Below the pieces are notes generated by a model, which worked only from the letters and a program-made list of their open reading frames with translations, had not been told where the DNA came from and did no database searches. From positions 434,001-498,000 of the forward strand of contig LSRY02000043.1 in NCBI GenBank assembly GCA_001643675.2: a stretch of DNA of 64,000 bases, in the 5' to 3' direction. This document shows, piece by piece, positions 2,347 through 54,840 of this stretch (position 1 is its first letter; each line of letters starts with the position of its first letter). The stretch is from Monocercomonoides exilis PA203. Lineage: Eukaryota > Protista > Preaxostyla. Position numbers and translations under genes: made by a program.

Positions 2347-4795
2347 TCAGATTTGTGAGAAGAATAGACGATGATAAAGAAGAAGAAGAGGAGAAGAAGA
2401 AGGAGAAAAAGAAAAAGAAAAAGAAAAAGAAGAAGAAGAAGAAGAAGAAGAAGATGATGATGATGATGATGACGATAATGAGGAGGAGGAGGAAGAGGCA
2501 AAAGAATATGACAAAGGAGAAAACGAAGAAGCGAGTGAGGCACCAACAACACCCAAGACCTATGATGTGCGGAGTATGTGGTGATACAACAGCTGGACAG
2601 ATTCTCCGTCTTTAACATTCTGCTTCCTCCCAAAAAACAAGGAAACAGTGTTAGCCTGCGAGAAAGGGAAGAAATCATCTTTCTCTTTTTTCTTCTTTAC
2701 CTTTGGAGAAGCGATGAGGACTGCCGACTGGAACACCTTTTTGATGAAGCGGAGAGAAGATGAAAAGAAAGATTTTTTGCCTGGGCATTGCAGAGGACAA
2801 GGAGATTCCCTGAGGAAAGAGGAGGAAGCGATTGAGGCGCCTTCGTATGTTCTGTGGGAGGGAAACGAAGAAAATGGAGAAGGAAGAGGAAAAGAAGTGG
2901 ATGAAGAAGGCTTGGAGTTGTCAGTAGATGGCACAAGAGAGGAAGGCGATCCTTCGATGTGAGGAAGCGATTCTCCTAATGTGACAGTTTTGGTGAATCC
3001 TTTTCTGATTGTGCTGTCTGTTGAAGAGACTGAAGAAGCAGAAGAAGAAGATAGAGCAGAACGTGTTAGGACGGCGAGTGGAAGAAGCGACAAAGAAAGA
3101 GAACTTGTTGACTGTGAAGTGGAAAAAGAAGAAGAAGGCAGGAAAGGCAGCATGAAAGGAAGAAGCAGAGAAATAGGCAGTGTTGAGGAAAGTGACTGTG
3201 TGGGAGAGGGCAAGCGGAAGAGCAGTGGTCAACGCTGTTCCAAATCGGAGTAAGGGGTGGAAGATGAGGCAGAGATAAATGAAGCAGAAGCAGAAGGGGA
3301 AGGGGAAGGGAAAGGGAAAGAGATTGACGTATCAGAAGACATGCCGGAAATAGTGGATTTAGCAGAGTATTTTAGCGGAGAGATTGGAGAAACAGAAGAA
3401 GGATAAAGAGACAAGGGAGAGAAAATTGGTGAAGGAAAGGTGGAATGAACAGCCTTGTCGGGTATGGAGTCGGAGGCGGTTGGAGCTGCAGCTGTTGCTA
3501 CAGAAGCAGAAGCAGAAGCAGTTGATGTTGAGTTTGTTGTTGCTGCTGCTATTGATGTTGATGCAGATGTTGGAGTTGTTGTGTGTTTATCTGACTATTT
3601 GCATTGCTTCATATAAACCATTTCGAATGTTTCGGAGTCTGATGATGTTTCGAACGTGCTCTCATTATCAGGAAGCTTCCGGTCAGACATCTCTTCTCCT
3701 TCTTCTGATATTTCTTCTTCTTCCTCTTCCTTCTCCTCTTCTTCATTTCTTTCTTTTCTTCCTCTTTTCTCTCATCATTATCTCCATCACCATTATGTCT
3801 TGCTTCTTCCTCTTCTTTCTCGTCATCGTTATCAAGCAGAATAACTACTGTTTCCCACTTTTAACAATCGTGTCATATTTTCCTCCTCCAATTAGTTCAA
3901 AATTGAACTGAAAAGAAACTAGTTTTACATATGATATTTCAAAAAGATAGAAGAATAAAAGAACTCTATCACTTAATTGAGAGGTTTACCACTTTTTTCT
4001 CCTCATTTTCCTTCTCTCTTCCTTTTCTCCGAAATTCCTGGAAATTGACTCTCGCTAATTCCAAGGAATTCCTCCGAAGTGGGAATTTCTCCATCGGTAG
4101 ATTCTGTACGCGATGGAGAAATGGTTGCGTAATGTGATGAGAGACAAGTGCTTATGAGCAACTTACAGCCGCTGCTCCAGCCGATGGCGAGTCGTTAAAG
4201 AGAAGATGGAGGGAAGAGAAAAGGAAGAAGAGATAGAAGAAGTGGAAGTGGAAGAAGAAGAAGATACAGAAGTTAATGCTGATGATGATTGAGCCTCTCG
4301 ATCGCAATGGTGACTTTGTGGGACGAATATGAAGTGGGAGGTATTTTTGCAGTTCCTATGCTGATGGCGATTGGGGGAGTCTGTGTTGTGCAGAGGAGAA
4401 GTTGGTAGAATCAGCAGATACTCAGACAAACATGTGTGTGTTTGGGATTCGGTGATGAACGGCAGCAGATTCTTAGGAGATGGAAGAGAAGGAAAGGCAG
4501 GTGAAGCAAATGAAGAAGGAGAAGGAGAAGAAGAAGAAGAAAAATAAAGGAAGGAAGATGAGAAATAAATACAATTATTAAAGATTATCCATCATTGCTT
4601 GCTTCAAGTCCATCTGAACTTTAAGGAGATGATAACATTGAAGGTCCTCTTCAACTGAGTGCTTCATAAATGAAATCTGCTCATTGCTTATTTGAAGTTC
4701 TCATCTCCTGAATTCTTTTCAAGGTCCATAAAGACAGTCATTTTCCCCTTTGCGTTTATTTTTATCTTCCATCACGTTTTTCTCTTTTTATTTCA
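2347..4795 (-). pseudogene. Decayed host gene (Ser/Glu-rich hypothetical protein), 3' part, downstream of the Merlin insertion; boundaries approximate
   Basis: Minus-strand ORFs 3229-3414, 2560-3213 and 2347-2556 are in one frame and separated by single stops (TGA 3229-3231, TAG 2560-2562). The frame at about 4590-4795 continues the frame at 13031-13320 across the TSD. Confidence 0.55.
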
Positions 4796-4803
4796 CTCCT
4801 AAC
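4796..4803 (+). repeat. Left target-site duplication CTCCTAAC
   Basis: An identical direct 8-mer lies at 13023-13030; both copies abut the inverted termini GGCATAGG.../...CCTATGCC. Confidence 0.95.
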
Positions 4804-7541
4804 GGCATAGGTGTAACTGCGTCCCTTTTGCAATTCTTGTTTTTAGACATTAATTTTGTGATGTTTGAAATGCAAAAATTATTTAAAAACTTTTGTATGG
4901 ACCGATTTTTCGCAAAAATTTTTGTTTCTCGTGAAAAAACTATTTTAAAAAATGACCCATAAATATGAGTATTTTTTCAAAAAATAAATAAAACAAGATA
5001 ATTATGAAATAAAAAGTAGATAAAATGTTATTTATTATTATATTGTCCTATTTTAATAATAATGATTTGGGAAATAAAACATAAAAAAAAATAAATTAAA
5101 AAATTAAAATATTTTGATCAATCCCACAATTAAATTTTTAATATCCAAAAAATAAGAAATTAGTTTCTTTCGTCAAGAATAGAACCCTCGCTTGCGAACA
5201 TATAACAAATCAAATGTTTAGAAATATTATAAAAGTGTGCACTAAATGATTATTAACATTTCATTCAATTCTTTACAATTTTTGATTATGATTTTTAGGA
5301 AGATTATTTGCATGCTGCACAAGGATATTATTATTAAACTATGGTGCCAATGAATAAAGAAGAACAAACAAATCGTGTGAAACATTCTTTTTAATTATTA
5401 ACATTGTTTTATTAAAATTTTTGATAAAACATGAAAAATTTTATTATCTTTCTTCCAAAGAGAGATGCGTATGAAAACAAAGCTCCTGTTAACACAGCAA
5501 CAGCAAAGAAAATAGAGGAGAAATGTTTCAGGCAACGAAATGAAGAGAAAAAATGAATTTTGCATTTGTGAAGATGAAGTTAGATACAGACACAACCAGC
5601 ATGAGGAATGTATTTTCATTGATTGTTACAACATCACATCCCAGATCAATGAAAGTCAATTTCTGTTTGATCTTCGAGAGGGACATAACACTCGTAATAA
5701 TGCAATTAATGGAAAAGATTATTGCGAACACCACAGCGATACGGATTTGAATGGATTTGTAACAATTCATCAAAGTGATACGATTATTGTGAGCAGCGTG
5801 AATGGATCAAACGAAAAACAGTGTGGAACAAACACACTTCCATGTTATTCAATTGAGCATGGGCTGGTGCATCTGACTTCTGATTTCATGAGCGTGATGA
5901 TTGTTGTTGAAGAGAGTGTAATAGGAAGAGATAAATCTGAAGGAGATGGGTTTTAAAGGGGGAGAAGGAATGGAGAAAAACACATCTCTGCGGATATTGG
6001 ATGAGGGATGTCAATTGGGAGGAATCGCGAGTGAAAGAGGATCATCATTTTTCATCCCTGTCTTGGAAGAAGTGAAGAGCACAACACAGGCGAGTGGGGA
6101 CATGGACTTGAGCATTCGTGGGAAGCTGCTTCTTCCTCACAAATTGTCTCTGAAGATCAGCATGAAAAATGGGGATGAAGAGGAGATTGTGAGAAAAGGG
6201 ATTGAAGAAGAAGGGTTTGTTTCAGAGAATGAGATTCGCTCAGTTATTTCATGTTCAGAATTGGAGAAAGTGAGAGACGAGACAGAAGTGAGCGTGTGCA
6301 TTCTGTTTGGAAAAGTTGATTCTCCTTCATCAACTGAGTCTTTCATTCTGAAAAATGGAAGCGAAACACATTCAAGTGGAGATGAAAAACTTGTTGAGGG
6401 AGGAAAAGAAGGAAAATCATTTTGGCCGATTGCTGTTGTTGTTTGAGTTGTTGTTTTATTGTTTGTAATCATTGTTTCTGTGATATTTGCAGTCAGATGA
6501 AGAAAACAAAAGAGAAGAACAAAGGAATTGGAGGAGATTGTGAATGACACAGTGAAAAAGAATCCGAAGGCATTTGAGGTGGTGACGATGGAGATGTCGC
6601 CTGAAGAGCAGTGGCGAAGAGCAGAGAAAGAGGCAGAAAAGAAGAATGAAGAGAGGATAAAGAAGAGGGTGTATGATTCAAATATGGAACATTCAGAGTC
6701 ATCTGAGCATCTTCTATCTGAGAGTGGTTCGACTGAATACATCCTTGGAAGAGACTCTGACAAGATTCCTGAATGGGCATTGGAGAAAGATGAGGAAGAA
6801 GAGATAAGGAAGAGAACACCTTCTCCATCCATTTCATCGACTTCAACCACTTCAACCACATCAACAACTGATTCAGATTTCACATTTGTTCGAGGGGAGG
6901 ATTTGTGTCCAACCACTTCATCCATGTCGAATCTGGTGGATGCTATGGCCTGCTCGTCTCCCCATGAGAAGCTGATTGTGGATCTGAGGGATTCGCTGTT
7001 CATGCTGCTTCATGGAAGGAATGAGAAGAAAGAAATGGCGATTGGGAGTCTTCAGCAAAGAGAGCAGACAGCTGCTCAAATCCTGTTCTGGGTGGCGAAT
7101 GGAGCTCTCCATTCATTTGATGAAATGAACAATACTCTTTCTTCCCTTGCCAACCTCAGTCCTCACATTGTGTTGTTTTCAGAGCACATGGTGATTGCGA
7201 TTGCCATGCACTCCGACTGCTCCTCTGATGATTCAGATTCATCCTCCATCTCATCATCAACAGTTGTGACATCTGCCAGTGGCAACGATGATGATGATGA
7301 TGACTCCATTCCCTCATCGGCATTTGAAGAGGATGAGGATGCCTTCAGAAAGGAGTGCCTGAGGTGGAAGGCACCAGAGCTGCTGATGAACAAGAAGATG
7401 GGGGCAACAAAGGAGTCAGTTGCCTTTTCGATTGGGATGATGTTGTGGGATTGTTTGACCCTTCAAATCCCTATTGGAGATTATAAGGCAGAAGTGGCAG
7501 GGCAGAAGATTGTGAATGGAGAGATATCGAATATGAAAAAA
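4804..7541 (+). repeat. Left inverted arm (2,738 bp) of the Merlin element
   Basis: Mirror ORFs have constant coordinate sums: 5540+12286, 5946+11880 and 6528+11298 all equal 17826, and 7163+10675 equals 17838. The arm appears identical to the right arm over 4804-6614 and 7122-7541 and is diverged over 6615-7121. Confidence 0.95.
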
Positions 7542-7643
7542 GTTGAGTGGTTTCGACTGAAATATATGATAAAAAAAAGTGTACCGGTTCAGATGCCAGA
7601 TAGAATATCATTTTCAGAAATGATAAAAAAATTCATTTGGTAG
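5540..7643 (+). pseudogene. Captured fragment of a receptor-pseudokinase family gene: partial ectodomain, TM helix and TK-like C-lobe
   Basis: Homologous by eye to the 40189-52425 protein (QINESQFLFDLRE, QCGTNTLPCYSI, KGGEG, MEMSPEEQWRR, LRWKAPELL). It has frameshifts, an internal deletion of about 300 codons at about 5950, in-frame TGAs at 6444 and 6498, and TAG at 7641. Confidence 0.85.
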
Positions 7644-8241
7644 TTTCGTGACTATGCAGCAATACAGATTGTGTCAAATGCGATGTGCTATGCGGGAGGA
7701 ATTTGAGAAGAAAGAGTCGATTTCTTTGCTCAAAAAAACAGCAGAATAGTGGAGTGTGTTCTGATAGATGAGCACAAAGATATTATCGTTGTTGGCAATG
7801 GGAACAGCACAAACAACAAAAGCGAAAGAAATTGAAAAGACAATTTTGAAACAAATGAAATGTGTATGTGTGAATGCGTTTATACATGGATTGTTGCATG
7901 CAAATAAATACTTCAAATTAACTCAAAGGGAATAAAATTTTTTTTGTTCTGAATTGTGATAATTGTTTTATAGAACAAACTCTTTATTTTTGCATATATT
8001 GAAAAATCGAATGAATTCAATGTTTGAATTTCTTGCATTTTTGTATTTTTATAAATGTTGTTTTATTTTGAAACTTCATTAAAAACTGTGCAAATAATAT
8101 TAAAATAAAATATGTTTTTCTTTCTTTAAAAATTCAAAATATTAAAGTGCATATTTCACTCGAAAACATAAAAAAAAGAGCCATTATTAATATACATTAA
8201 TTCAAATTTTTTAACTTTAGCAAAGTCAATCCATTTCACAA

Positions 8242-9387
8242 ATGGTTGAAAACAAATCATTTGAAAAAGAATTAACATTCAGTGAGTTTTTAATGCGATC
8301 GAATGGGAAAAATCAATTGGCTATTGAATTGCTTTCCAAATTTGGGATAATAAAAAGAAATCGAATGTGCTGGAAATGCGAAAAAGCAATGGAATTAAGG
8401 ATGCAAAAAAAAGAAAGTGATTACTATGCTTATAAATGCACGAAATGTGGGAAAAATTACAGCTGGAATTATGATTCAATTTTTATGGAATTTCATCTTT
8501 CACCATTCAAACTTACATCATTGTTGTATCATTTTTGGTACAAACACTCAATTAAGGAAGTCACTTTTGAATCGAAAATATCAAACAAAACAGTAGTGAA
8601 ATTATTTGAAAAGTTAAGAAGAATATGCTGTTATTTTGAAACATTCGAAATGGAAAAAATAGGAAAAGATCGAATAGTGGAAATAGATGAAACTTTAATT
8701 CATAAAAGAAAGAACGGTGTTGGGAGATGCAGAGAACAGCAATGGCTATGGGGAGTAGTAGAGAGAAAAGAAATTGGAAAGCCACAAAAATTGATTGTCG
8801 AATTTCTTCCAGATCGAAAAGCTGATACCATATTGTATTTTGTAAAAAAGAACATTGAAAGATCTTCAACTATAATGTCTGACAAATGGTCGGCATATAA
8901 CTGCATTAGTGAAAACGGCTTCACCATTGACAGTGTAAATCATTCTCTCAATTTTGTTAAGCCTGAAAATCCTAAAGTTTACACTCAAACAATCGAAAGT
9001 GTGTGGTCTCATCTGAAAAACCACATTCCAAAAAGAGGAAGAACATTCATTAAGACAAAAGAATATGTTTATGAATTTCAATATCGATTCAACAACAGAC
9101 TCACACCTGCAGCATACATAAAGGAACTTTCAAAAATCAGCAAGAAAAGTTTGGATATTTTTCTTCGTTCTTACAATGAAAGCGTTGCAAGTTTGAAAAG
9201 CATTCTTCTGAAAGAAAGGAAATTTAAATTGTCTTCTTATTTATTAAAGAAAGAGGAATTGAGAAAAAGAAACAACTATGAAATGTATGATGAAAATGAA
9301 CTTGATGAAATGTTGAAGAAAAAAAGATCATTAAAGCTAATATTAGAAATAAAAGAATCAACAAATTTAAAAAAGAAGAAAAAATAG
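8242..9387 (+). CDS. Merlin/ISXO2-like (IS1595 family) DDE transposase, 381 aa; C-terminus possibly extended by frameshifts to about 9787
   Basis: N-terminal Zn ribbon CWKC...CTKC. Catalytic motifs are VEIDET, GR...QWLWGVVER, PDRKADT, IMSDKWSAY, VNHSLNFV, TQTIESVWS and YVYEFQYRFN. Confidence 0.92.
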   Translation: MVENKSFEKELTFSEFLMRSNGKNQLAIELLSKFGIIKRNRMCWKCEKAMELRMQKKESDYYAYKCTKCGKNYSWNYDSIFMEFHLSPFKLTSLLYHFWYKHSIKEVTFESKISNKTVVKLFEKLRRICCYFETFEMEKIGKDRIVEIDETLIHKRKNGVGRCREQQWLWGVVERKEIGKPQKLIVEFLPDRKADTILYFVKKNIERSSTIMSDKWSAYNCISENGFTIDSVNHSLNFVKPENPKVYTQTIESVWSHLKNHIPKRGRTFIKTKEYVYEFQYRFNNRLTPAAYIKELSKISKKSLDIFLRSYNESVASLKSILLKERKFKLSSYLLKKEELRKRNNYEMYDENELDEMLKKKRSLKLILEIKESTNLKKKKK

Positions 9388-9398
9388 ATGATGAAGAT

Positions 9399-9479
9399 GA
9401 GAAAGAAGAGAAAGAAGAGAAAGAAGAGAAAGAAGAGAAAGAAGAGAAAGAAGAGAAAGAAGAGAAAGAAGAGAAAGAA
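9399..9479 (+). repeat. Tandem 9-bp repeat (GAGAAAGAA)x9
   Basis: Read directly; it encodes EKE repeats in the -1 frame relative to the transposase. Confidence 0.9.
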
Positions 9480-10037
9480 ACAGAAACAAAAGTTGAAACT
9501 GAAGATGATATATTTTCATCAGACATTGATTGCAAAACTGCAAGAAAGAAGAAAAAAGAAAAAGATATAGATCATGCGATGGAAGATTTCTGAAAAACAA
9601 CGACAGCCAACAGTTAAAAACGTTAGAGTTTGAAACCCTAAAGTTTTGTGAAAAAAAGAGAGAAAAGATTGAAGAAATGGAGAAAAAAGAAAAAGATAAA
9701 ACAAATGCAATTCTTAATCGAAAAATACTAAGAAGTTTTATTAAGTCAACAAATATTGGAACAGAACAGTCTCCAATAAATTTATGAATTTTTATTTCAC
9801 AACACTATCAATCACATCACATTTTGATCACGTTGCAAAAAAAATCCTAATTAACGCAAGTGTTCGTAAATGAATTTCTAATAAAAACAAACTTCATCTC
9901 CTTTTTGTGAAATTTGAATTACACATTTCGATGCAAATGAGTTAACAATCTTGTAATCGTAAACATAAATAAGTCCATACGCATGTCCATCAGCATATAA
10001 ATTTTCATTTGTTTCATTATATTGTTGAAACCATGCT

Positions 10038-12286
10038 TCACAAACACATATTGGCATTAACATTTGCTTCACTTATTTGTTCCATCTTCACGCGCAAGAC
10101 ACAAATATGCTCAGACAATGCACTCTTTCCAATGGACTCTGCTGCAATCCCGATTATGTCAGTCATTGTCTTCACAGTTGCACCTTCAGGAAAATCTTCA
10201 ACCAGCACACACTTTATTACCACGTGCGATAGTCTGTCTTCAAAATGCGATAACACACTCATCTTAACTTTCTGCTTTAGCCTGTCCTTCAAACCATTTT
10301 TTCATATTCGATATCTCTCCATTCACAATCTTCTGCCCTGCCACTTCTGCCTTATAATCTCCAATAGGGATTTGAAGGGTCAAACAATCCCACAACATCA
10401 TCCCAATCGAAAAGGCAACTGACTCCTTTGTTGCCCCCATCTTCTTGTTCATCAGCAGCTCTGGTGCCTTCCACCTCAGGCACTCCTTTCTGAAGGCATC
10501 CTCATCCTCTTCAAATGCCGATGAGGGAATGGAGTCATCATCATCATCATCGTTGCCACTGGCAGATGTCACAACTGTTGATGATGAGATGGAGGATGAA
10601 TCTGAATCATCAGAGGAGCAGTCGGAGTGCATGGCAATCGCAATCACCATGTGCTCTGAAAACAACACAATGTGAGGACTGAGGTTGGCAAGGGAAGAAA
10701 GAGTATTGTTCATTTCGTCAAATGAATGGAGCGCGAGATTAGCCACCCAGAACAGGATCTGAGCAGCTGTTTGCTCCCTCTCCTTCAGAGTTCCTATTGC
10801 CATCTCCTTCGTCTTATTCCTTCCATGCAACAGCATGAACAGCGAATCCCTCAGATCCACAATCAGCTTCTCATGAGGAGATGAGCAGGCCATTGCATCG
10901 ACAAGATTCGACATGGATGAGGTGGTTGGGCACAGATCCTCTCCTCGAACAAATGTTGAATCTGAATCAGTTGTGGATGTGGAAGAGATGGAAGGTGAAG
11001 GTGTTCTCTTTCTTGTATCTTCCTCTTCTTCTTCATCTTTCTCCAATGCCCAATCAGGAATTTTGTCTGAGTCTTTTCCAAGAATGTATTCAGTTGATCC
11101 ACTCTCACTCAACAAATGCTCAGACGACTCCGAATGTTGCATATTCGTATCATATATTCTCTTCTTTATCCTCTCTTCATTCTTCTTCTCTGCTTCCCTC
11201 TCTGCTCTCCTCCACTGCTCTTCAGGCGACATCTCCATCGTCACCACCTCAAATGCCTTCGGATTCTTTTTCACTGTGTCATTCACAATCTCCTCCAATT
11301 CCTTTGTTCTTCTCTTTTGTTTTCTTCATCTGACTGCAAATATCACAGAAACAATGATTACAAACAATAAAACAACAACTCAAACAACAACAGCAATCGG
11401 CCAAAATGATTTTCCTTCTTTTCCTCCCTCAACAAGTTTTTCATCTCCACTTGAATGTGTTTCGCTTCCATTTTTCAGAATGAAAGACTCAGTTGATGAA
11501 GGAGAATCAACTTTTCCAAACAGAATGCACACGCTCACTTCTGTCTCGTCTCTCACTTTCTCCAATTCTGAACATGAAATAACTGAGCGAATCTCATTCT
11601 CTGAAACAAACCCTTCTTCTTCAATCCCTTTTCTCACAATCTCCTCTTCATCCCCATTTTTCATGCTGATCTTCAGAGACAATTTGTGAGGAAGAAGCAG
11701 CTTCCCACGAATGCTCAAGTCCATGTCCCCACTCGCCTGTGTTGTGCTCTTCACTTCTTCCAAGACAGGGATGAAAAATGATGATCCTCTTTCACTCGCG
11801 ATTCCTCCCAATTGACATCCCTCATCCAATATCCGCAGAGATGTGTTTTTCTCCATTCCTTCTCCCCCTTTAAAACCCATCTCCTTCAGATTTATCTCTT
11901 CCTATTACACTCTCTTCAACAACAATCATCACGCTCATGAAATCAGAAGTCAGATGCACCAGCCCATGCTCAATTGAATAACATGGAAGTGTGTTTGTTC
12001 CACACTGTTTTTCGTTTGATCCATTCACGCTGCTCACAATAATCGTATCACTTTGATGAATTGTTACAAATCCATTCAAATCCGTATCGCTGTGGTGTTC
12101 GCAATAATCTTTTCCATTAATTGCATTATTACGAGTGTTATGTCCCTCTCGAAGATCAAACAGAAATTGACTTTCATTGATCTGGGATGTGATGTTGTAA
12201 CAATCAATGAAAATACATTCCTCATGCTGGTTGTGTCTGTATCTAACTTCATCTTCACAAATGCAAAATTCATTTTTTCTCTTCAT
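10038..12286 (-). pseudogene. Second (inverted) captured receptor-pseudokinase fragment with its own C-terminal tail
   Basis: Mirror of 5540-7541. ORF 10264-11298 is the pseudokinase. After a frameshift at about 10295, ORF 10038-10292 (EDRLS...FPEGATVKTMTDIIG) matches the family C-terminus (FPEGYVMLTMTDTI at about 63400). Confidence 0.85.
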
Positions 12287-13022
12287 TTCGTTGCCTGAAA
12301 CATTTCTCCTCTATTTTCTTTGCTGTTGCTGTGTTAACAGGAGCTTTGTTTTCATACGCATCTCTCTTTGGAAGAAAGATAATAAAATTTTTCATGTTTT
12401 ATCAAAAATTTTAATAAAACAATGTTAATAATTAAAAAGAATGTTTCACACGATTTGTTTGTTCTTCTTTATTCATTGGCACCATAGTTTAATAATAATA
12501 TCCTTGTGCAGCATGCAAATAATCTTCCTAAAAATCATAATCAAAAATTGTAAAGAATTGAATGAAATGTTAATAATCATTTAGTGCACACTTTTATAAT
12601 ATTTCTAAACATTTGATTTGTTATATGTTCGCAAGCGAGGGTTCTATTCTTGACGAAAGAAACTAATTTCTTATTTTTTGGATATTAAAAATTTAATTGT
12701 GGGATTGATCAAAATATTTTAATTTTTTAATTTATTTTTTTTTATGTTTTATTTCCCAAATCATTATTATTAAAATAGGACAATATAATAATAAATAACA
12801 TTTTATCTACTTTTTATTTCATAATTATCTTGTTTTATTTATTTTTTGAAAAAATACTCATATTTATGGGTCATTTTTTAAAATAGTTTTTTCACGAGAA
12901 ACAAAAATTTTTGCGAAAAATCGGTCCATACAAAAGTTTTTAAATAATTTTTGCATTTCAAACATCACAAAATTAATGTCTAAAAACAAGAATTGCAAAA
13001 GGGACGCAGTTACACCTATGCC
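10297..13022 (-). repeat. Right inverted arm (2,726 bp) of the Merlin element
   Basis: Reverse complement of 4804-7541, 12 bp shorter within the diverged block 10717-11211. Confidence 0.95.
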
Positions 13023-13030
13023 CTCCTAAC
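13023..13030 (+). repeat. Right target-site duplication CTCCTAAC
   Basis: Identical to 4796-4803. Confidence 0.95.
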
Positions 13031-13320: not shown

Positions 13321-14733
13321 TTTGATAAGTTTTACAATGAGAATAAAAAGATAACGATAAAGATATAATACTTATAATTGAATTCTTCACTGTTTCAACT
13401 CAAATCTTGAACATCACAGGTTTAATAAAATCATCATCTGTTTCTCATATTTTTCATATTCTTTTTATATTGCGAATGCAATTCTTCTTTCACAATTATC
13501 CGACTAGCTTGAAAATGTTCGATAAAATAAACATCTTTATAGAAGATTAATTTAAAGAAACATACTTTCTCATTCTTTAAGTATTTTTCCTATTTCAATT
13601 TAAAGCAAATATATAGTTCATTTTTCTGAATGAAGTTAAAATAACAATAGTTTTAATGATGTTAATATGGAAAAAAAAGTTGTAAAATTAAAAATTCACA
13701 ACAAATTTAAGAACTGTTCGATAAATCTTTATTCATTGAAACATTAACTGGGTTTTACAGTTTTTCACACTTTCATTCTCTTTAACAATTATTATTTAAA
13801 ATTTGAAATTTAAAAAAAAATTCAGATATTGCTATTTAAAATTCAATAAAGAACTTTTTGATTATTAAATTACAAGAATTTCGGAATATAAAAATTTGAG
13901 CGAAATGCATTTGTTCAATAGCACACAAATTCCTAGCTGTCTTGAGGTTAATTCAAATTTGTAAAAAAAACAAACTTTCATGAATGACTCTTCTTATTTG
14001 AAGATTAATAAAAAAAAATACGATAGATGTATTTAGACACTTTTCCAGTGTGTTGATTGCAACGAATTAGCTTTCTAAATATGATACAAAAACAATGTCA
14101 CATATTTTTTTTATTGCTAAATGAAATAACATAAGTTCAGCAATTTTCTGTTTGAAAAATAAGGATTTCGAAAGGCAGATTGTTTTCAATAGTATTTCTT
14201 CTTCATTTTTTTATGAATTTCTTTTTTGCGACTCAAAAATCCATCGTGACAAATTCGAAAAAAATTTATGGTTCATCCAAGTTTTTCAAATTAATCAAAA
14301 ATTGGAACTCAAAAAATACTTAAATTTAGCAAAAATGACAATATTTATTAACATTTTGTCAAAAAACAATATAAAATAAAATTGAAAAGAAAATGAAAAA
14401 TAAAACACTTTAATAAAAAGTGAAATTATCTACTGACATTTCTGTTTTGTCACTGACAACCACAAGCACAATTTTTTCTTTAGTGTAACACATGCTTAGG
14501 AAAGAAAAAGAGAGAAAGAAAATTTTTTGTTGAACAAGAAATTTATTTTCGATAGCATTATTGGTGAGTGCACAATATCTTGTTGTGAAAGAAATTTTGT
14601 GATGATGATAACAGTATTGCAAACCGTTTCATTATTATGTTTTGTCTTTCTTTTGTGAAGTAACTTTTTTATTGAATAAACCAAATTGGAATTTCCCTCT
14701 GAATATGGAATTGAACAAAAGTTTATCACATTT

Positions 14734-14990
14734 GGGTGATTATTTTTGAAATTATAATTTTTTTAGGAAAAATTTCTTCTCAAATATTCACTTCGAATGC
14801 TAGTTGATGAACACAGAAAAGTGAAAACTCTGATAAAAAACATATCTGTATTGCTTTCATATCAAACATTTTCATTAAAAACAATTGAGATGATTTTAAC
14901 ATTTCAAAGAAAATATCATTTGTTATATCTTGAAATTTTTTAAGTTACCAACACCCAGAAAAAAGCAATGATTTAAAAAAATAGTCACCC
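14734..14990 (+). mobile_element. 257-bp MITE, copy 1 (TIR consensus GGGTGATTATTTTTGAAATCAT)
   Basis: Inverted ends gggtgattatttttgaaattat / atgatttaaaaaaatagtcaccc, flanked on both sides by ATTT; internal motif ATGAACACAGAAAAGTG. Confidence 0.8.
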
Positions 14991-15085
14991 ATTTCTTATT
15001 TTTTTCAATACGTGTGTGATTGTTTTTTGAAATCATTGTTTTTTTTTGTGAGTTGATTCTTTGAAGGTTTGATTTTAATGGAGAT

Positions 15086-15343
15086 GTGCGATTATTTTTG
15101 AAACCATATTTTTTCTGTCAAAATTTTGGGTTTGAATATTTGAAATGAATATCCGCTAATGAACACTGAAAAGTGTAAAATCTATTATATGACTCCAATA
15201 CTATTTTTTTTTGAGATAAATTGTGGCTTTTGAAACGATAGAGAAACATTATTTATTATTATGAAAATTATTTTATTAACAACAATTAATATTCAAAATT
15301 ATGAGCACCCTGAAAAAAGTTATGATTTCAAAAATAATCACCT
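15086..15343 (+). mobile_element. 258-bp MITE, copy 2
   Basis: Ends gtgcgattatttttgaaaccat / atgatttcaaaaataatcacct; internal motifs ATGAACACTGAAAAGTG and CACCCTGAAAAAAG are shared with copy 1. Confidence 0.75.
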
Positions 15344-15403
15344 ATTTTTCATTTTTATATTTTTCTATCATAAGAAACAACGTATACACTCACGATTAAA
15401 TAT

Positions 15404-15660
15404 AAGTGATTATTTTTGAAATCATATTGTTACAAACAAAAATTTCAGTTCGAAAATTTCTCTTTATATAAACAAATGAACTGTGAAAAGTGAAAAGGCT
15501 TATTGAATACATTTTCATCTTTGATTCGGAAAAATCATTTGTTATTTAAAAACAATTATCATGCTTTCTCTATTTTCTATTAACATTTTCTTTCAAAAAA
15601 CCAACAATCTTCATAAAATTAACTCCCCAAAAGGATGAATGATTTCAAAAATAATCACCC
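15404..15660 (+). mobile_element. 257-bp MITE, copy 3
   Basis: Ends aagtgattatttttgaaatcat / atgatttcaaaaataatcaccc; internal motif ATGAACTGTGAAAAGTG; flanks ATAT/ATTT. Confidence 0.75.
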
Positions 15661-16683: not shown

Positions 16684-19600
16684 ATGCCAATTATAAGATT
16701 TGAAGCTATTATCCCCAAAGAATTGATTGAACACTTCAACGAACATTTGTTCTTACATATAAAGGGAAATGCTGATGCGCTTGGTAAATGTCAACAATCA
16801 ATCGCACCTGTTATGAAAAGGAATTTAGATACACATTCATTTTGGCTTGAGATTGATCTTCCTCCATCAATTCCAGTTGTATTTCATTATTGCATATATT
16901 TTCATGAAGAATACATTGGAGAAGAATTCAGTGAACTGACTTTTATTGTTCCAGGTTATTTTCAAAATATATATTTCAAAGAATAATTTTGTTTTTTTGA
17001 TTCTAAATTTTCTGTTTAACTTGTTTATCATAGATATAAGATACACACACACGCACATTTTGTTTGATGGTTTTGATCTTTCTCAATTGAAAAGTGAAAA
17101 ACCTTTGAGCGATGCTGATTCATTTCGCAATTTTCTTCCAATGCTAAAAAATCCTTGCCTTAACTGGCAAGATGACAATGCGTTTAATTATTTACCATCA
17201 CATCGTTTTACTCAACTCATGGAAGGTGTTGAAATTCGTGCGATTTTTCACTCATTATTATTGACAGAGCCTCTTCTAAGAAATTCATCGAGCAAAGCGC
17301 TGCTCCTAAGAGTCAAAGATTCGCTTGAGACGCACTTATTACCTCTTCCGCTTCAACACCCATATTCTGAACCATTTATCTTCCGCTGTACAACAAAAAA
17401 CAATTTCAATTTCTTCGCTGAAATTGGATATATATCTCCATCAGACGAAGAAAGAGTCAAGACTGGAACATTCAAGGCCTTGTGTTCATGCAATTTTCTT
17501 GGAATTTCGTTAACATCAGATTGTTGCAGGATAATTGTACCATTTATGTGGGAATTAAACCGCAACGACGGGCAAGATGATTTATTGAAGGAGTTTGCAG
17601 GACAGAAGCCATTGTATGAAAGAGGCCTATCGCAAATTCCTGCGCTTTCTTGCATCAAATTCCTTATGATCACTCCCTTCCGCAACGGGATGATGGCTCG
17701 GCCACTTACAGGCTATATGAAAGAAACCGCAAGCGCGAATCAATCAACATCTCTATCTACAACTACATCACCTTCCAATATTTCTTCTTCAACTACATCT
17801 TCTATTAATTCTCAAAATTTTGATCCTGCTGCTTCACCTTCCGAAATTAATGATTCAAAGATGATTGCAAGCATATCCCAAATAACTTCTGACACGCCAA
17901 CAGACTCAGATGAAACTGAAGTAACCTCAACAGAACACCAACCATCATCATCATCATCTTCTTCTTCTATCTCCTCCTCCTCCAAACAACCATGCTCCTC
18001 AGACCGAAACCTCTTCTTAACACAGACGCTCTCTCACATGCGCACACACGTCACATCTTCTCCTTCTTCCTCGCTGTTGGACGTCGGCCACAGAGGCTCT
18101 GGTGCGAATGCGCGACACGATTTGTCTGTGAGGCGGCCTGTGGTGAAGGAGAACACGCTGCTGTCATTCCTGTTTGCGCACAACGTGGCGCATATTGACT
18201 GGGTGGAGACAGACGCGCAGCTGAGCGCAGATGGTGTGGTGGTGCTGTCACACGACTTTATGGCGACGCTGTCGTCGAAGCTGGATGTGCCTGTGTGCAG
18301 GCTGACCTCAAAGCAGTTCACGGGGCTGAGGGAGGTGTGGACGCGCGGGAAGGAGGAGAGGAGAGGAGGAAGGGCGGAAAGGAAGATTGAGGAAGAATTG
18401 GAAAGAAAGATGGGGGAAAAGAAAGAGGGAAGCGGAGATGAAAAGATTGGAATGAGAAATGAAGAAAACCTTCAATCTGACTCGAAAACCGGAAAAAATG
18501 AAAGATATTTTGAGAGGAAAGGAGCAAAAGGGTTTGGAATGATTGGCAGAGTGGAGCGAGAGACGTACGAGGAACGCGCAAGGAGCGATGTGAATGTACG
18601 CACACGGGCAATGCTGAAAGAAGAAGAGAAAGAGGAAAGAGAAGACAGGGAAGAGAATGAAGATGCTTCAGAGAGTGATGACGGTGATGATGATGATAAT
18701 GAAACCAGTGAAAAAACTGATATTGAGACAGCAAATGCAGAAAACCTTGAAATTAAATCAATCAAAGCGAATGAAAAACAAATTGAGAAACAGTCAGTTG
18801 AGTCAAAATCTTCGCATCGATTGAGCAAACTGCACAAATCACACAGCTGGACATCTCTTCTCTACTCTTCCCAAAGCCATCATGATTGCACTTGCTCCAC
18901 GAAACAGAAGCCTTTCTCACTTGCCACAACTCTGAATAACCATTCAACTGCTCCAGAATCAACAACATTAAACACAAAGCAATCACCTGTTAATTGCCAT
19001 TCTGTTATTTTAATTTCTCCTCCTCCTTCTTCCAAAACGCCTCCTCCTTTCGCGCAAACAGAAGCCGGAGCAGCCGATACGTTTGTTCTGCCGACAGCTC
19101 CTGCAAACTTCTTTGAGGGCATTTCACTCACAAAGGTGTCTGCGAAGCCCCACCACAATTCGGATGAGCAACACAAAGAAGAAGACAAAGAGAAAGAGAA
19201 AGAGAAATACAAGAAAGAAGGAGAGAAAGGCACTGAAACAATGAATGACACATCACATTCACCACATCAGCCTTCTTCTTCTGCTCTTCCTTTCCTGTCA
19301 CCTTCGCAGCCCATCCGCTTTTCTCATTGGGAAGTGCTTGTCGAAGACGATCCAACCACACTTGCCTCTTTCCTGCGCTTCACTCCTCCTTCCTTAGGCC
19401 TATTTTTGGAGGTGAAATATGCCCAGGATGAGTTCCAAGAGTCACAACATATGAAGCTGAAGAGTCGAAACGAGGTGGTCGATGCTATTCTCGACACAAT
19501 CGCTGATTGCTGCTGCTGCGACTGCTGTTTTGGCAGTCAAAATGAAACTTTTGAAGGATCTGCTTCTCCAAAGAAATGCTGCTGCCATTGCAAACCATCA

Positions 19601-20125
19601 GCCACAAGTCAATCGTCGTCTTGCTTGCCGTATGATCGTTCATACCCTGCTTCTGCATCAGCATCTGCAGGCTCAACTCCAAATTGTCTGTGCTCGCGTC
19701 TGTCCCGCATAGTCTTCACAGCCTTTGATCCGGACATCGTGACGATGCTGCTTGTGAAACAGCAGTGGTTTGGGGTGTTTATGAACTGTGTGCATTTCTC
19801 CACGCCAGATATCCAGTCGCACTGCAACTTCCACCCATTTGACCCGCGGGCGATGGTTCCGAACGAGACGGTGCGGTTTGTGAGGAACGAGGGAGGGAGC
19901 GGGATCTGCTGTCTGGTGGACTCGCTGCTGGAGCACCCGCGCATCGCAGCGAATGCGAGGAGGAACGGGCTGGCGGTGATGTCGTTTGGAGAGAGGAATG
20001 TGAGGAAGCCGGTGAGAGTGTATGAAAGAGAGCAGCTGGGTGTGTCGGGGATCATTTGCGACAATGCGCAGATACTCGTGAGGGAGGAGAAGGAGTCAGA
20101 GAGAAGCAAAGAGGGAGATAAATAG
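16684..20125 (+). CDS. Glycerophosphodiester phosphodiesterase (GPCPD1/GDE5-like: CBM20-like N-terminus plus GDPD domain), 2 exons, intron 16955-17033
   Basis: GDPD motifs VGHRGSG, KENTLLSF, WVETDAQLSADGVVVLSHD, LFLEVKY, IVFTAFDPD and GVSGIICD. Exon 1 is CBM20-like (IKGNADALGK...FWLEIDLP). A GT..AG phase-1 intron joins ORF 16684 and ORF 16946 in frame. Confidence 0.85.
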
Positions 20126-27745: not shown

Positions 27746-30700
27746 GAATGCAATGGGGATGTAGAAAATATTACGAAAAGAAAAGAAAGAGAAAAGAAAA
27801 TTTCTTTATAAACGAGTAAATGATCCAATAAAGAAATCAAAAAATTGAGTTTCATTTTCGTAAAACCTTTTTTTAAAAAATAATAATAATGCTTCATTTT
27901 CTTTTCAACTTTATTAATTTCCTTCTTCTTCACAATCCATTCTATTCTATTCTATTCTATTCTGTTCTATTTTAATTTTTTATTCACCCAGAAAAATCAT
28001 GAGCTGGGCGTCCCCCATCATCTATAGCCTCTCCTTCTCTGAGCTCAGCGTCACCTTGCCCATCGCAGCCGCCTACAGCAACTACTCGATGATGGGCATG
28101 TTTGTCAACATGATTGCCCTCATCATCATCGCTGCTCTGTCCGGCATCTCCATCCTCCTCGTCTACTCCCTCTTGCAGATCTCTGTGGACTCCCGTGTGT
28201 TCGACATAGGCATCATGCGCATGGTTGGGTCAACCCGTTTCAAGATCGTCTGCCTCATCATCACACAGACGTTGCTGTATGCAGTACCGGGCTGGGGGCT
28301 TGGGGTGGGCGCAGGGTGCGGAATGAACGTGTTTGCCGTGCGCATCCTCACAAGAGAGACAGGAGTGCCTGTAGAGTTGACAATGCCGCTGTCTGCTGTG
28401 ATGTTTTCACTCTTCATTTCTCTCTTTGTGACGCTTATTGCTGCCATCTTCCCCATCCGCTCGGCCCTCAAGCGCAACCTCCACGACGCCATTGATGTGA
28501 CCCACCGCGTCAACAAGTCAGTCAAAGTGTCCATCGAACGCAGCGACGACTTCAAAAACTCTTCGTCGTATTCGATGCTCTCTTGTGGAATGCTGCTGGC
28601 TGGCATTGGGGTGGGCATGTACATCCTCTTGCCCCAGGCGTTGCTGGCGATGAACGTCACCCTTCTTGCTGTGCTGTTCTTCTCCATGCTGTTCATGATC
28701 CTCCTTGCCTGTGTGGTGCTGTGCATCAACTTCGAGCACGTGTTAGAGAGAGTCATAGCAGGTGTCTTCTTCTTCTGGGAGACACGCTCCATCCGCACTT
28801 TGTCTGTGAAGAACCTCGGGGCACACCGCCAGCGTAACCGCAAGACGACGCTGCTGTTTGCCGACTCGCTGGCGTTCATCGTGTTCATCGACATCGCCGC
28901 AAATGTGGTCGGGAAGACGCTGCAGATGGGCATATTTATGAAACATGGGGCAGATCTGCACCTGAATGCAGCGAAGACACAGTCGATTCAGAGCTCCATG
29001 CGAAGCATTCCGCGGGAGGACGAGGTGGATCCGTATGTACCGCGGGCAATCAGCATCCGCTACATCACAAACATGTGCTATTTGGAGGAAGTGCTGGAGG
29101 ACTTTGACGATGTGGTGGCATCGCACTCGTTTGTGTCGCATTCACTGCAGGACTTGCACACACAGTATGTTCGTGTGCAAGTAGCGAATAGAGGCAGATC
29201 ACATGCGTTCTTCTACCGCCTCTTTGCTGCCACTCCCACGTTCTTTGACGGGATAACTAACAGTGAGTATATGCACTTCTCAGCCACACGCAAAGTCGGT
29301 CTGGATCCTGTGGGCATGCTCTATGCAGATTTGGGCGAGCCAGCACAGACTGTGTTCTCGTCGGGCTTCGAAAAGGCGATGAGCGCAAAGATCGACGAGA
29401 CACACCTGCTGAATGTTGTGCCGGCAATCACTGCAGCTAGCTCTCTTTCTTCAAGAAGGCAGCCATCTGGGTTTGGCAACACGTATCTGAGCAATGCCAT
29501 TGATAGAGTGAACGTGACCGCCGCGGCGTTTGCAACGAGCATCCCGTTTTTTGAGATGCCGACGCAGATGAAGAACCAGGTGAATGCAGATCTGCCCCTT
29601 TCAGCACCGTTTTTCGCGAGTCTGCTGCCCGCGGGTGCTAATTTATATCAGAACATTCGATGGAACCACTTGTTTATTCGGTTCTTTCCCAATGCCACAG
29701 ACGAAAGAAAGTCGCAGCTGTACAACACTTTGCAGATTGTGACTGACACGATGCACCCGGATTACAAGAAGAAGAACAAGAACGAGACGAACTGTGGAGA
29801 TCCGCTGAAAGGGTACGGGTGGTGGACGAATTGGGACGGAGGGGAGAAGGGAGGGAAGAGAAGCAATGGAAAAGAGGATGTGCAAATTGATGATGTTGTT
29901 GATGATGGTGAAGAGAAAGATGCAGGCGATTCTCCAAGTGGAAATAAATCTTCACAAAGAAACACTCAAAGAAGGATTAATTACAGCAATTCAATCAAGC
30001 ATTCATTAAATAATAAGTTCAATCACGCAAGTGATTCAAGTTTTTCTCATATTTCTAATCAATTCTCCTCCTCATCTTCTTCTTTGCAAGAACATCTTTC
30101 TATTCATTCAAATCATTCAATTGATTCTTCTTCTCTTTCTTCTTCTCTTTCTTCTTCTCTTTCTTCTTCTCTTTCTTCTTCTCTTTCTTCTTCTTCTGAC
30201 TTATCCACTTCATCCTTCACCAGTTCACTTTCACAGTCTGAACAAATTTCCACTTCGAATGAAGAAGATCCCGATGATGATGACCCCACAAAGGGGAACC
30301 GATACAACCTGTGGAGCTACCAGCGGTCGATGGAAGGCTTTGGGAAGGCGATGTCGATGCTGTCTATTGTCTTCACAGCTGTTGGTGCGATTGTCGAGTT
30401 ACTCTGCTTCTTCTCGCTGATGGCGTCGATGCACACTAACATTTTAGAGCAGAAGAAAGAGATCGGTCTTATGCGAGCGATGGGTGTGACGTCGTTTCAG
30501 CTGGTGCGTGTGTATGTGGAGGAGGCGTTTATCATCGTGATGACTGCTTCTTTCATCGGCACTTTGTGCGGGCTTGTTGTTGGATACCTGCTTTTGTCGC
30601 AAGTGGCGATGATTCAGGGGCTGGCTGTGCCTCTGTATTTCCCCTGGCAGCTGGTGATGGTAATGATCCTGATGGCAATTGTGACAGCCATCTTGTCAGC

Positions 30701-30761
30701 AGCCGTGCCGACTCTTTCAATCACCCTGAGGCCGATTGTGAATGCACTGAGATTTATGTGA
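25501..30761 (+). CDS. FtsX/MacB-like (type VII ABC) permease family protein, multi-exon
   Basis: Two FtsX domains (SVDSRVFDIGIMRMVGSTR and ILEQKKEIGLMRAMGVT...YVEEA) and an N-terminal MAENTAGEIDM motif. Introns 25674-25732 and 27332-27991 keep the frame. Several small exons between 25.9 and 27.3 kb were not resolved exactly, and the start codon is uncertain. Confidence 0.8.
26426..26470 (+). repeat. (CTTT)n microsatellite, intronic
   Basis: Read directly. Confidence 0.85.
27342..27745 (+). repeat. Imperfect (AG)n polypurine microsatellite inside the 660-bp intron
   Basis: Read directly; it lies between donor 27332 and acceptor 27991. Confidence 0.9.
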
Positions 30762-40188: not shown

Positions 40189-43100
40189 ATGAAGATATCT
40201 GTAATTTTATTAGTGAGATTCATTATTGCATGCATTATATCTCGTTCAGAACTGTCCACATCCACTGAAGATGGATTCAGGCATCAAACTAAAGAAGATA
40301 GCACGTTCATTCGTGCTCCATTTTCTGAAATAGAAAAGTTAAGTCTAACTCAACATCTCACGCTTTCAAGACGGAAACAAATGTCGAATGATCAAGATAT
40401 TCAAAAATTATCAAATGAAGAAAAAATGAATTTTCATATGGTTGAATGCTCTGTTGTTTCTAGTGTCAAAGAAATAAATGCTTCTTTGAAGATAGAGAAA
40501 CTGAACTTTATTTCTACTGAGAAAGCGCACACTGCAATCGTAGAGTCTAGTTCATTTCTGGAATTACGAACTGTTAAAACTATTCTCGTCTCAAATGAAT
40601 ACAAGAACATATTTATATGCAATGAGAGCCGTTTGTATTTTAATAATATTTCTGTGATTACATTCGATGCCAGTGGACTTAGAGAGTCACTCGTGACATT
40701 TACATCATCAAAGGATACAATACACCATTCATCAAAATCAACTGTACTGGAAATAAAGAAGAATTGCTCGCTTTCTGTTGAGAATTCAGTTTTTTCATCT
40801 TTTCTGCACTTGAGCGGAAATCCATTTTTGGCTTCTTCTGGCGCAGATAGAGTAATGGTTAACCGATGTATTTTTCAAAATATCTCTTCAGAAGGGAAGA
40901 AAATGCATTGTTCACAACAAGAACTGCAACCTTCACACACATTTCTTTTTAACAGCATGTTTACAAAAGTTGACATTCCGTTTTATGGCGGGATTGTATT
41001 GACTCTTTGCAATGAGCATTCATTAACAGCAGATAATTGTTCATTTCTTTCAGCACAAAACACGAAAAACTTATCTCAGAAAATTTCAAAAAATGGAAGT
41101 TCCAATTGTTTCATTCATTATTGTTTATTTAAAGATCTACGATCTGGAACAAGTGGCGCAGCAGTGCAATATTCTGGATCTGGAATTTTTAATGTGACAG
41201 ATTGTGATGCTGTTAATTGTCTTGGGAATCATTGCGGAGCATTTGGTTCCTGGGGTTCTGCGGAAAGTCATTTGTTGAGATGTACAGCAACAAATTGTTC
41301 TGCTAACGCATTCGGTGGAGGAACTCTGATGAATGGAGGAACTATTTCTAATATTCAAGACAACAACTATACAAATTGTGCAACGGAAACTACGAATGGA
41401 GGAGGATTGCATCATAGAACTGGCCCACCATCGCCAAATGATGTTATCATTAGGTGTTATTGCTTTAATTGCACAAATAAAGGAGGTGGTGGAAATGCTG
41501 GAGGCGGAGGAATGTGGATTGGAGAAACAAATGGTACAAAGATAATTGAATGCTGCTGCTGCCAATGCTTGGCAACAAAAAGCATAGGCGGGGGAATTGG
41601 GCTATCGTATCCTGCTTCTGGGGAGAAAGGTGAACAAAGTCCAATTCTCAGTTTTTGTTTTTTTAAAAACAATAGTGGGATTAATGGAGGAAATGATGTT
41701 AGTGTTGGGAGAGAATGGAAATCAACAATAACAAAAGATTGTTTTACTCAATGTTATTCATCGTCAGAACTTAATCATGTGATCATTTTTGATGGAATTG
41801 CACAAAACGAGTGGATTCCATTTGCTGCTTTCCCAAATATTCATATCAATCAGTCAGGTACAGATAATGATTTGTGTGGAAATCTGACCATTCCATGTGA
41901 AACAATTGTTTATTCATTAAATAAATGGAACAGGTGGGAAAATCAGTTGTTTATTCTATCTCCAAATTCTTTTTCAGCTCAAAACATTCAAGTAGAAGGG
42001 AAAACATATGAATTTGAAGGAAACCTTAACACGTTAAATATGCAAAATACTGTTTTTGAATCGACAACTCAGTCAGGAGGGAGCCTTTTCGAGATTCATT
42101 CAGATAAACTACGTGTGCGTCGTATCGTATTTAAAATCCCACATCCACCATTTTCACCCACTCTGTTTCGAACAAATACGGATGGAGATGCGATCCTAGA
42201 TATTCAAAATATTACAGTTATGCAGCAGTCATCATCACTGGAAAATTCAGTTTTTATTCTGCTGAGTGGTATAGTTATTTGTGAATCAGTTGTAATTGAC
42301 ACTTTGACAACGCAAGACCATTCGATCATAAAAATGGAATCTTCATGCGTATCATTATCTGCCAATGACTCTGTATTTAAAAATACAAATTGCAAGAAAG
42401 GAAATGGAAGCATTATCAATTCAGTGGTTGGAAACTCATCACAAATTCTTTTAACAGGATGTAACTTCTCGAATTGTTCATGTTCTGGTGGAAGTGGCGG
42501 ATGTTGCTTCTTTAGGATGATGCTTGGAGGTCAAGTTACCCTTGGGTTACATGATATGGAAATATCGTCATGTAATGCAGAAGGAACAGAGAATGATCAA
42601 GGATTCGGAGGTGGAGTGTTTATGGACATAAGAGATGGAGTTTGTGATTTCAAGTTTTATGAGATGAAGTTTCAATCTTGCACTGCAACAAAAGGTGGAA
42701 ACAGTGTGTTTGTTGAAGCAAAGAAGATGAGAGACGCGTTAATTAAGGAAAGAATAGATTTTAATTATTGTGGTATGAGTGACAAAGATCTTGAGGGATT
42801 TGAAGATGGATATTATGGTGAAGCTATTCCATTGATTCCGTATTTGCTAACTTTTTCATCTCCTGCATATGTTGGAGGAACGAAAAGTAGAGACTTCACA
42901 GCTTGTGGATTTAATAATTATCCATGTTCAACAATTGAAATGGCAGTGAGACTTAGATTTCCTTCATCAAAAAGGTTTATTTCTCTTTTTGAGGAGTATA
43001 TGTTTTCGAAAGACATAGAATTGAATGACTATAATTGAGATATAAGATGTGATAAAAAATCGACAATTAACTTGTTGCCTTTTGAAGAGTTGAAATGTTC

Positions 43101-52100: not shown

Positions 52101-52425
52101 CTCGATTGGGATGATGCTGTGGGAGAGTCTGACGCTGGAGATCCCGTTTGGGGAGTATGAAGCAGAGGTGGCGGGGATGTGGCTGAAAGAAGGAAAGCGG
52201 CCGAAGACGGGAGGGCTGGAAGGGAGCAGGCTGGAAGGGCTGGTGAAAGGGTGCTTTTCGCAAGAGGCGAGGGACAGATGCACTCTGACAGATGTGAAGC
52301 GGGTGCTAATTGGGTTGTTCCCGGCCGGGACAGTCATGCTCACAGTGACCGATGCGATTGGGCTGGAGGAAGGATCAGGAAGCTACAGGAAATACAGCAG
52401 GTTCAGTGGGGAAGGAAGCAACTGA
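40189..52425 (+). CDS. Giant receptor-like protein (about 4078 codons): signal peptide, Cys/Gly-rich repetitive ectodomain, TM helix and tyrosine-kinase-like pseudokinase; one in-frame TGA at 43036-43038
   Basis: ORFs 40189-43038 and 43072-52425 are in the same frame. There are eight CG-x4-PC modules and many GG(G/A) motifs. TM WSVIVCIAVVVILLITLIIFIV is followed by the kinase C-lobe LRWKAPELL...FSIGMMLWESLTLEIPF...RP...CFS...R. No GxGxxG, HRD or DFG motif is present. Confidence 0.8.
51229..52070 (+). repeat. 842-bp direct repeat, copy A (cytoplasmic region)
   Basis: Constant offset of 11077 to 62306-63147; the overlapping ORF translations are identical (51302/62379, 51314/62391, 51860/62937). 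Confidence 0.9.
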
Positions 52426-53246: not shown

Positions 53247-53858
53247 GGAAAGAGTGGACTTAACCGACACCCTTAAATTAACATCCATAATCATTTTCCC
53301 AACATATTAAATGATAAATATTTAATATGGGTGATTATTTTTGAAATCATAACTTTTTTCGGGATGCTGATTATTTTGATAATTCATTGTCAAAGAGAAT
53401 CAATTAATCTTTGAAATGAAAAAATCATTTCAATTGTGTCAAAAGCCAATATTTGATGAAAATGGAATACAAAGATTGTCTTTATAGGATTTATCACTTT
53501 CCTGTGTCCATTTATCAATATTCAAAACGATATTATCAAATCGAATTTTTTGTTCAAAAAAATATGATTTCAAAAATAATCATCCATATATTCTAATTTT
53601 ATTTAGAAAAATAACTATATTCAAATATTAAAAATCATCTTCTTTCTTATCATTTATTTACAAAAATAATTAGATTTTCTAGGAAAACCCTAACTTTTTT
53701 TTTTACCTTTTCTTAACCATAGCAAATAAAACGCGAAAACAATTAGTCGTATAACACTAAAAAATCTTCAATGCAGAGATTGTTTAAGAAAAGAAATAAC
53801 ATAAATATGGATGTAATGAGTGTTATCAAAATAGGTGTCGATTGATTCCACTTTTACC
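53247..53858. mobile_element. Degenerate ~610-bp MITE-like element that hosts MITE copy 4
   Basis: Left end GGAAAGAGTGGACTTAACCGACACC versus reverse complement of the right end GGTAAAAGTGGAATCAATCGACACC, plus a subterminal ACATCCATA/TATGGATGT pair. No clear TSD. Confidence 0.55.
53329..53585 (-). mobile_element. 257-bp MITE, copy 4, in opposite orientation to copies 1-3
   Basis: Ends gggtgattatttttgaaatcat / atgatttcaaaaataatcatcc with ATAT on both sides; the internal motifs appear as reverse complements (AATGGACACAGGAAAGTG, CATCCCGAAAAAAGTTAT). Confidence 0.8.
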
Positions 53859-54775: not shown

Positions 54776-54827
54776 AAATAAAAATAAAAATAAAAATAAA
54801 AATAAAAATAAAAATAAAAATAAAAAT
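54776..54827 (+). repeat. (AAAAAT)n microsatellite
   Basis: Read directly. Confidence 0.85.
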
Positions 54828-54840
54828 ATACAAATATAGT

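Follow-up and report, generated by a model that had tools for sequence, protein, structure and literature searches.

A Merlin element of Monocercomonoides exilis with kilobase-long inverted arms carrying host receptor sequence

Merlin superfamily TIRs are described as 24-462 bp long, those of most M. exilis families being 23-29 bp, and unclear inner borders have been noted (Lopes et al. 2021, PMC8101967). The available text of that report makes no mention of kb-long arms or host cargo, nor does it contain the word "kinase". In plant Pack-MULEs, acquired sequence can enter extended TIRs (PMC3310237). The Pack-TIRs of animals are mostly single-copy and have an identifiable parent; Merlin is unnamed there (Tan et al. 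2021, PMC8277862). The foldback-type elements FB, Galileo, and Tetris have kb-long variable TIRs with tandem sub-repeats, a structure tied to transposase loss (PMC4079207). Bacterial IS1595-family elements, MTnSag1/tISSag10 and tISCpe8, carry a passenger between 25-bp inverted repeats (PMC5704250). The element described here is quite likely an autonomous Merlin that captured receptor cargo, mirrored it in both arms, had it overwritten by host sequence, and transposes as a whole unit. Each ingredient has a precedent; what is new, as far as the literature search found, is their combination in a Merlin. No report of this combination in Merlin, or of a Pack-TIR with Merlin, was found in the literature.

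The window, i.e. the whole 64-kb stretch of M. exilis DNA analysed, contains an element of 8,219 bp at 4804-13022, delimited by sequence inspection and self-BLAST. Features are on the plus strand unless stated otherwise. An exact 8-bp TSD, CTCCTAAC, flanks the element at 4796-4803 and 13023-13030, and is found in the window at these two sites only. The terminal GGCATAGG, which starts 5'-GG and is present at both element ends, has a single site in the window, at 4804 directly inside the left TSD; CCTATGCC likewise has a single site, at 13015-13022 directly inside the right TSD. The left inverted arm, with its 5'-GG terminus, spans 4804-7541 (2738 bp). The right inverted arm, which contains the mirror copy of the cargo, spans 10297-13022 on the minus strand (2726 bp). 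In self-BLAST, 4804-7541 and 13022-10297 are 96.6% identical over 2744 columns. Self-BLAST and the unique TSD 8-mers thus confirm the originally predicted order of TSD, long arm, transposase-bearing spacer, inverted arm, and TSD; structure and junctions are those of the assembled sequence. The right spacer (9892-10296, minus strand), defined by comparison of copies, includes what is left of the 3' end of another receptor paralogue (~10134-10247) and stands where a longer subfamily has a 2.2-kb spacer.

The outermost ~335 bp (4804-5139) form a terminal core common to short non-autonomous relatives, as judged from matches and arm lengths. These short copies have partial cargo and keep arms of 336-506 bp, and matches on contigs C41, C52, and C58 stop at 334-335; the ~335-bp core is therefore probably the original TIR of the lineage. 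A 3.9-kb non-autonomous copy with 336-bp arms and its own TSD, ACTTCAAT, is nested in a 9-kb autonomous-type copy, between cargo and transposase (C25:1204732-1208630; L017, L059, L054). Further candidate elements, recognised by related termini, include many 3-4.5-kb pairs ending GGCATAGGTGTAAATT or GGCATAGGTCTAAATG and larger pairs at C7:1625522-1636938, C12:950872-961275, C91:696074-706169, and C57:416305-423328.

The spacer encodes a transposase of the Merlin/IS1595 type (ORF 8242-9387, 381 aa). The profile search suggested with the prediction matched this ORF to PF12762, DDE_Tnp_IS1595, with E 2e-21 and 77 bits (cut-off 27); the transposase of a twin copy on contig C13 matched with E 7e-21. 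The DDE core held to have been retained is present: D149 (VEIDET), D214 (SD), and E252 (TIESVW) are invariant in seven aligned eukaryotic and bacterial homologues. A Cys pair lies at the N-terminus, and the best match among database homologues is to an ISXO2-like transposase of M. exilis (46%). The DDE_Tnp_IS1595 domain, DDE triad, 5'-GG ends, and 8-bp TSD bear out the Merlin identity, but arms of 2738 and 2726 bp are far outside the published 24-462 bp, a descriptive rather than diagnostic range. Comparison of the lineage with the published M. exilis Merlin families F1-F7 (PMC8101967) is through their text descriptions. The C13 copy, otherwise identical, has an open 513-aa frame that ends at ~9787 in window coordinates; compared with it, the window ORF shifts frame within an A-run (9369-9379), through either a genuine slip or a homopolymer error of the long reads. 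Between the C13 and C61 transposases there are 61 synonymous vs 29 non-synonymous codon differences, a ratio consistent with long propagation by the lineage's own transposase. At C80:242235-242951 (L004), the transposase of another Merlin lineage (28% aa) directly adjoins a TSD-less family copy. A metagenomic Merlin-type transposase (P0003) is fused to OTU-type peptidase domains (PF10275 and PF02338).

Copies of the element were sought across the assembly by a 16-mer terminal pattern allowing one mismatch, which gave 50 matches vs 1 for the control. The matches form ~20 facing pairs with a spacing of 2.7-13.9 kb. Nine transposase-bearing copies were examined in full: C40 (the window copy), C13, C25b, C80, C7, C25a, C61, C8, and C21. 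They are 8.2-13.9 kb long with arms of 1.6-3.7 kb, and all nine contain this receptor cargo, so the element belongs to a family and is not a one-off. Seven of 11 complete copies (the window copy and six others) have a perfect 8-bp TSD, all seven different; in one more, 7 of 8 positions match, and in three (C25b, C80, and C21) the TSD is absent. The C13 twin shows no substitution relative to the window copy, only small indels in A- or C-runs, and has its own, different TSD. Thus the entire 8.2-kb unit transposed with its cargo very recently, in agreement with the claim that it moved as one. Excision and insertion would be catalysed by the transposase, as the twins with different TSDs suggest, with the biochemistry presumed to follow that of the family.

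Two subfamilies are distinguished. The longer one (C61, C21, C8, and partial copies on C12 and C19; 11-14 kb) consists of a ~720-bp non-coding end, ~1,850 receptor codons, the transposase, a unique 2.2-kb spacer, and a right arm of 1.6-2.5 kb. In the window subfamily (8.2-9.8 kb) the cargo is shorter and internally deleted and the 2.2-kb spacer is lost; almost the whole cargo is mirrored in the right arm, at whose end lies what remains of the 3' part of another paralogue. A distant Merlin on contig C16 (transposase 55% identical, 10.6 kb) has arms that are 100% identical over the 1.2 kb sampled, and carries receptor ectodomain cargo that has no DNA match to the cargo of the window family. Arms with receptor cargo are thus not confined to a single lineage. 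The right spacer of the longer subfamily has matches of 66-68% at four loci that lack a listed family terminus (C9:1104235-1294821 and C17:1218632), and it may itself have been captured from the host, as a second such sequence. In two copies the flanks (L041, C19:133075-134577, and L039, C21:536634-537158) hold frames that look retroelement-like by eye, which suggests that these copies inserted into other transposons.

Putative receptor-pseudokinase sequence makes up ~1.9 kb of each arm. As predicted, the cargo is part of the inverted arms: from 5612 inward, each is homologous to the receptor ORF at 43072-52425 of the window (5612-7541 to aa 2094-2205 and 2506-3096, 52-56% aa). An ectodomain fragment (5612-5938, by homology to host aa 2094-2205) is followed by a lineage-specific deletion junction and a frameshift near 5946-5956. 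The juxtamembrane, transmembrane, and kinase-remnant tail (5952-7685, by host homology and PF07714) has in-frame TGA stops at 6444-6446 and 6498-6500. It covers PF07714 positions 164-257 only, and the C-lobe alone matches Pfam and PDB kinases. The cargo has one strong hydrophobic segment, and no HRD or DFG motif is visible in its translation. Judged from sequence, it is a predicted receptor pseudokinase fragment with a single span and a kinase-like tail. The largest gene family of M. exilis consists of protein "tyrosine kinases" (PMC6759080); the cargo family is taken to be this one. The original prediction derived ~2 kb of each arm from the receptor family at 40-63 kb. The homology to that family holds, but the genes at 40-63 kb are relatives, not donors: the cargo has only 74-79% DNA identity to them (74-78% to the genes at 51 kb and 62 kb), and closer free paralogues are found on other contigs.

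These features set the element apart from its closest counterparts. Like Pack-TIRs and Pack-MULEs, it is a TIR element carrying host gene sequence. However, its family keeps the transposase, mirrors the cargo over kilobases, and bears a mosaic of many paralogues rather than the sequence of one parent; free genes match it at 79-89% over long blocks and at 98% over a short tract only. A Pack-MULE needs a Mutator-type transposase or TIR, whereas the window transposase belongs to PF12762. In its workings the element resembles Pack elements, though strictly it is not one of them. With foldback elements it shares long, variable TIRs (0.3-3.7 kb across all copies, including short ones), but its arms derive from a gene and it retains its transposase; unlike the foldback tandem sub-repeats, no direct repeats of at least 100 bp were found in self-BLAST of 12 copies. 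The bacterial IS1595 transporter elements resemble it in transposase family, 8-bp duplications, and passenger genes, but have no mirrored cargo.

Transposase DNA is 86-99% identical among family copies, whereas their cargo tails are 74-84% identical, no closer to one another than to free genes. Between the window copy and C25b, the transposases are 99% identical and the cargo tails 84%, the differences falling in sharp tracts. Consecutive stretches of 1474, 113, 214, and 891 bp and then the 2770-bp spacer have 2, 22, 1, 157, and 33 differences, respectively; for the 113-bp tract the Poisson P is 2e-19. This tract (6284-6390, maximum extent 6244-6397), present in both arms, is a gene-conversion tract whose donor is a free receptor gene at C5:1406382. 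This gene, an open frame among related C5 paralogues, is 98% identical to the window within the tract and ~80% outside; at 21 of 22 informative sites the window has the C5 version. Outside 6244-6397 the window agrees with C25b, and both differ from the C5 gene by ~20%. C25b, C29, and C14 retain the older version of the tract, and no family terminus was found on C5 (16-mer pattern, at most one mismatch). The direction is therefore host to element, and this is the single tract with a readable direction. For the longer blocks, 6600-7150 (in both arms) and 7125-7520, donor searches gave no free match above 89%; the best, at 88-89%, indicate that these blocks are older, composite, or from unscored loci.

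The two arms are identical except for one block (6615-7121), seen in the arm alignment, in which they are ~85% identical. Its 44 synonymous vs 14 non-synonymous codon differences are expected of sequence shaped in working genes, and the version in each arm is nearest to different free genes. The block is therefore imported sequence and not the product of decay. Hypermutation of the cargo was rejected in view of the sharp tracts, the synonymous excess, and the donor found. Arms within a copy are 96.6-99.9% identical although copies differ from each other by 10-25% (termini 84-99% and cargo tail 74-84% identical between copies). Such homogenisation also occurs in free receptor genes: an inverted pair at C26:432368-446830 is 99.0% identical over 2.9 kb, and seven convergent free pairs have equal scores. 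Since it is patchy and extends to transposon-free pairs, arm homogenisation is probably not transposase-driven, and general repair between nearby inverted repeats would be its simplest cause.

Two other origins of the arm identity were weighed. One end might be rebuilt from the other at each jump, through a panhandle or a replicative step. The outer 1.6-2.5 kb are indeed the most identical part in most copies, and a circular, possibly replicative intermediate has been reported for a bacterial IS1595-family element (PMC5704250). But the window and C13 twins both keep the same 507-bp block of arm difference, so that the jump itself leaves the arms unequalised, which led to rejection of homogenisation at each jump; in the window this block is flanked by identical sequence on both sides. 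Furthermore, C25a has identical inner arms but differences in the outer 500 bp, and free receptor pairs show the same homogenisation with no transposon. Such rebuilding is very unlikely. The inverted structure could also be an artefact of chimeric or fold-back nanopore reads or of repeat collapse, the M. exilis assembly having been made from ONT reads with Canu and ten rounds of Pilon (PMC8767320). Polishing with Pilon could inflate identities to 100% but cannot create the between-copy pattern. An artefact would also have to account for arms that stop exactly at the GG termini, distinct perfect TSDs at seven loci, a defined block of arm difference, unique spacers, copies up to 25% different from each other, and a short copy that sits inside a long one and has a TSD of its own; it is thus exceedingly improbable.

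Whether the elements serve the receptor family is a separate matter. As vehicles, they would spread and reshuffle the family, donating mosaic tails back or seeding new genes. Gene conversion is usually possible in both directions, which counts for this reading. Some copies have an almost unbroken cargo (open over 916 codons in C7 and 696 in C25a, and over ~1,860 with one break in C61), and a 100-bp segment of the cargo in C80 shares 98% identity with a free gene on C26, a match compatible with transfer in either direction. Against this, the window cargo is broken (the 5' part of the gene is missing, with one frameshift and two stops), and the longer cargo has no signal-peptide-like stretch at its start, unlike the host gene at 40189. 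Nor is the cargo significantly better preserved than the transposase, with 2.2 vs 4.0 breaks per 1,000 codons (P 0.15); no selection on cargo frames was detected. For the cargo segment 5960-6240, matches of at least 95% occur in element copies only, the best free gene reaching 87%, so this element haplotype is in no free gene. The ~20 paired termini compare with roughly 1,000 first-look candidate loci of the receptor tail, making the elements a few percent of the family; the contigs of the free genes sampled (C5, C26, and C31) are devoid of family termini (at most one mismatch), and the one traced flow runs from host to element. The predicted role as a vehicle for amplifying and shuffling the receptor family thus finds mostly negative evidence, with export looked at on one segment, and is unlikely. 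The elements borrow from the receptor family, and nothing shows that they built it. A function for the mirrored cargo, either as read-through 2.7-kb double-strand RNA that silences or tunes hundreds of receptor genes, or as mobile mixing stations that export paralogue mosaics to working genes, is somewhat less improbable but still doubtful. Most likely the cargo is a tolerated passenger.

The history favoured here is one of capture, mirroring, and overwriting. Long ago, an autonomous Merlin lineage would have acquired, directly inside one end and upstream of the transposase, the 3' portion of a host gene for a receptor pseudokinase. The cargo tree is a poorly resolved star, uninformative on single vs multiple capture; a single capture is therefore suggested by shared position and junction rather than phylogeny. 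The opposite end would then have lengthened into a mirror copy of terminus and cargo, presumably when nearby inverted repeats underwent repair or conversion with one another, which would also produce the identical receptor pairs arranged tail to tail. With hundreds of host genes homologous to it, the cargo would be overwritten by ectopic gene conversion in tracts of ~100-500 bp, as seen with a donor for one tract and presumed for the rest. Later arm-to-arm conversion copies a patch into the second arm, as the presence of the C5-derived tract in both arms shows. The order of events is therefore: conversion by the host gene, arm-to-arm copying, a further conversion of one block, and the jump that made the window and C13 copies. 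As these twins show, the whole unit still moves and makes 8-bp TSDs, the transposase presumably cutting at the GG termini.

The family extends the known Merlin build from TIRs of up to ~460 bp to autonomous elements of 8-14 kb with host-gene arms. It offers a clean, ordered record of ectopic gene conversion, from host-to-cargo tract through arm-to-arm copy to transposition, to which the window contributes the C13 twin, free of substitutions, and a conversion tract with a mapped donor. With the 99%-identical backbone of the element as an internal clock, the rate of conversion and the length of its tracts can be measured in the largest gene family of M. exilis. Part of the "unclassified repeats overlapping tyrosine kinases" in this genome (PMC8767320) may also be elements of this kind.

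The host receptor at 40189-52425 consists of 949 and 3117 codons separated by a stop-containing gap (43036-43071), a possible intron or break, and the two frames were kept separate. A second giant receptor, in at least five ORF pieces, lies at 55656-63520. The tails of these receptors (51118-52175 vs 62195-63252) are 95.6% identical over 1059 bp, with almost no differences at ~51300-52100 and ~50% or more mismatch outside; the pattern is that of local conversion between direct-oriented neighbours. Other host genes in the window, in 16946-20125 and 27999-30761, encode a GDPD-domain protein (PF03009) and an FtsX-like permease (PF02687). AT-rich imperfect palindromes and dispersed repeats of ~270-430 bp at 54507-55243, 14730-15496, and 53309-53597, 68-75% identical, are probably MITE-like.
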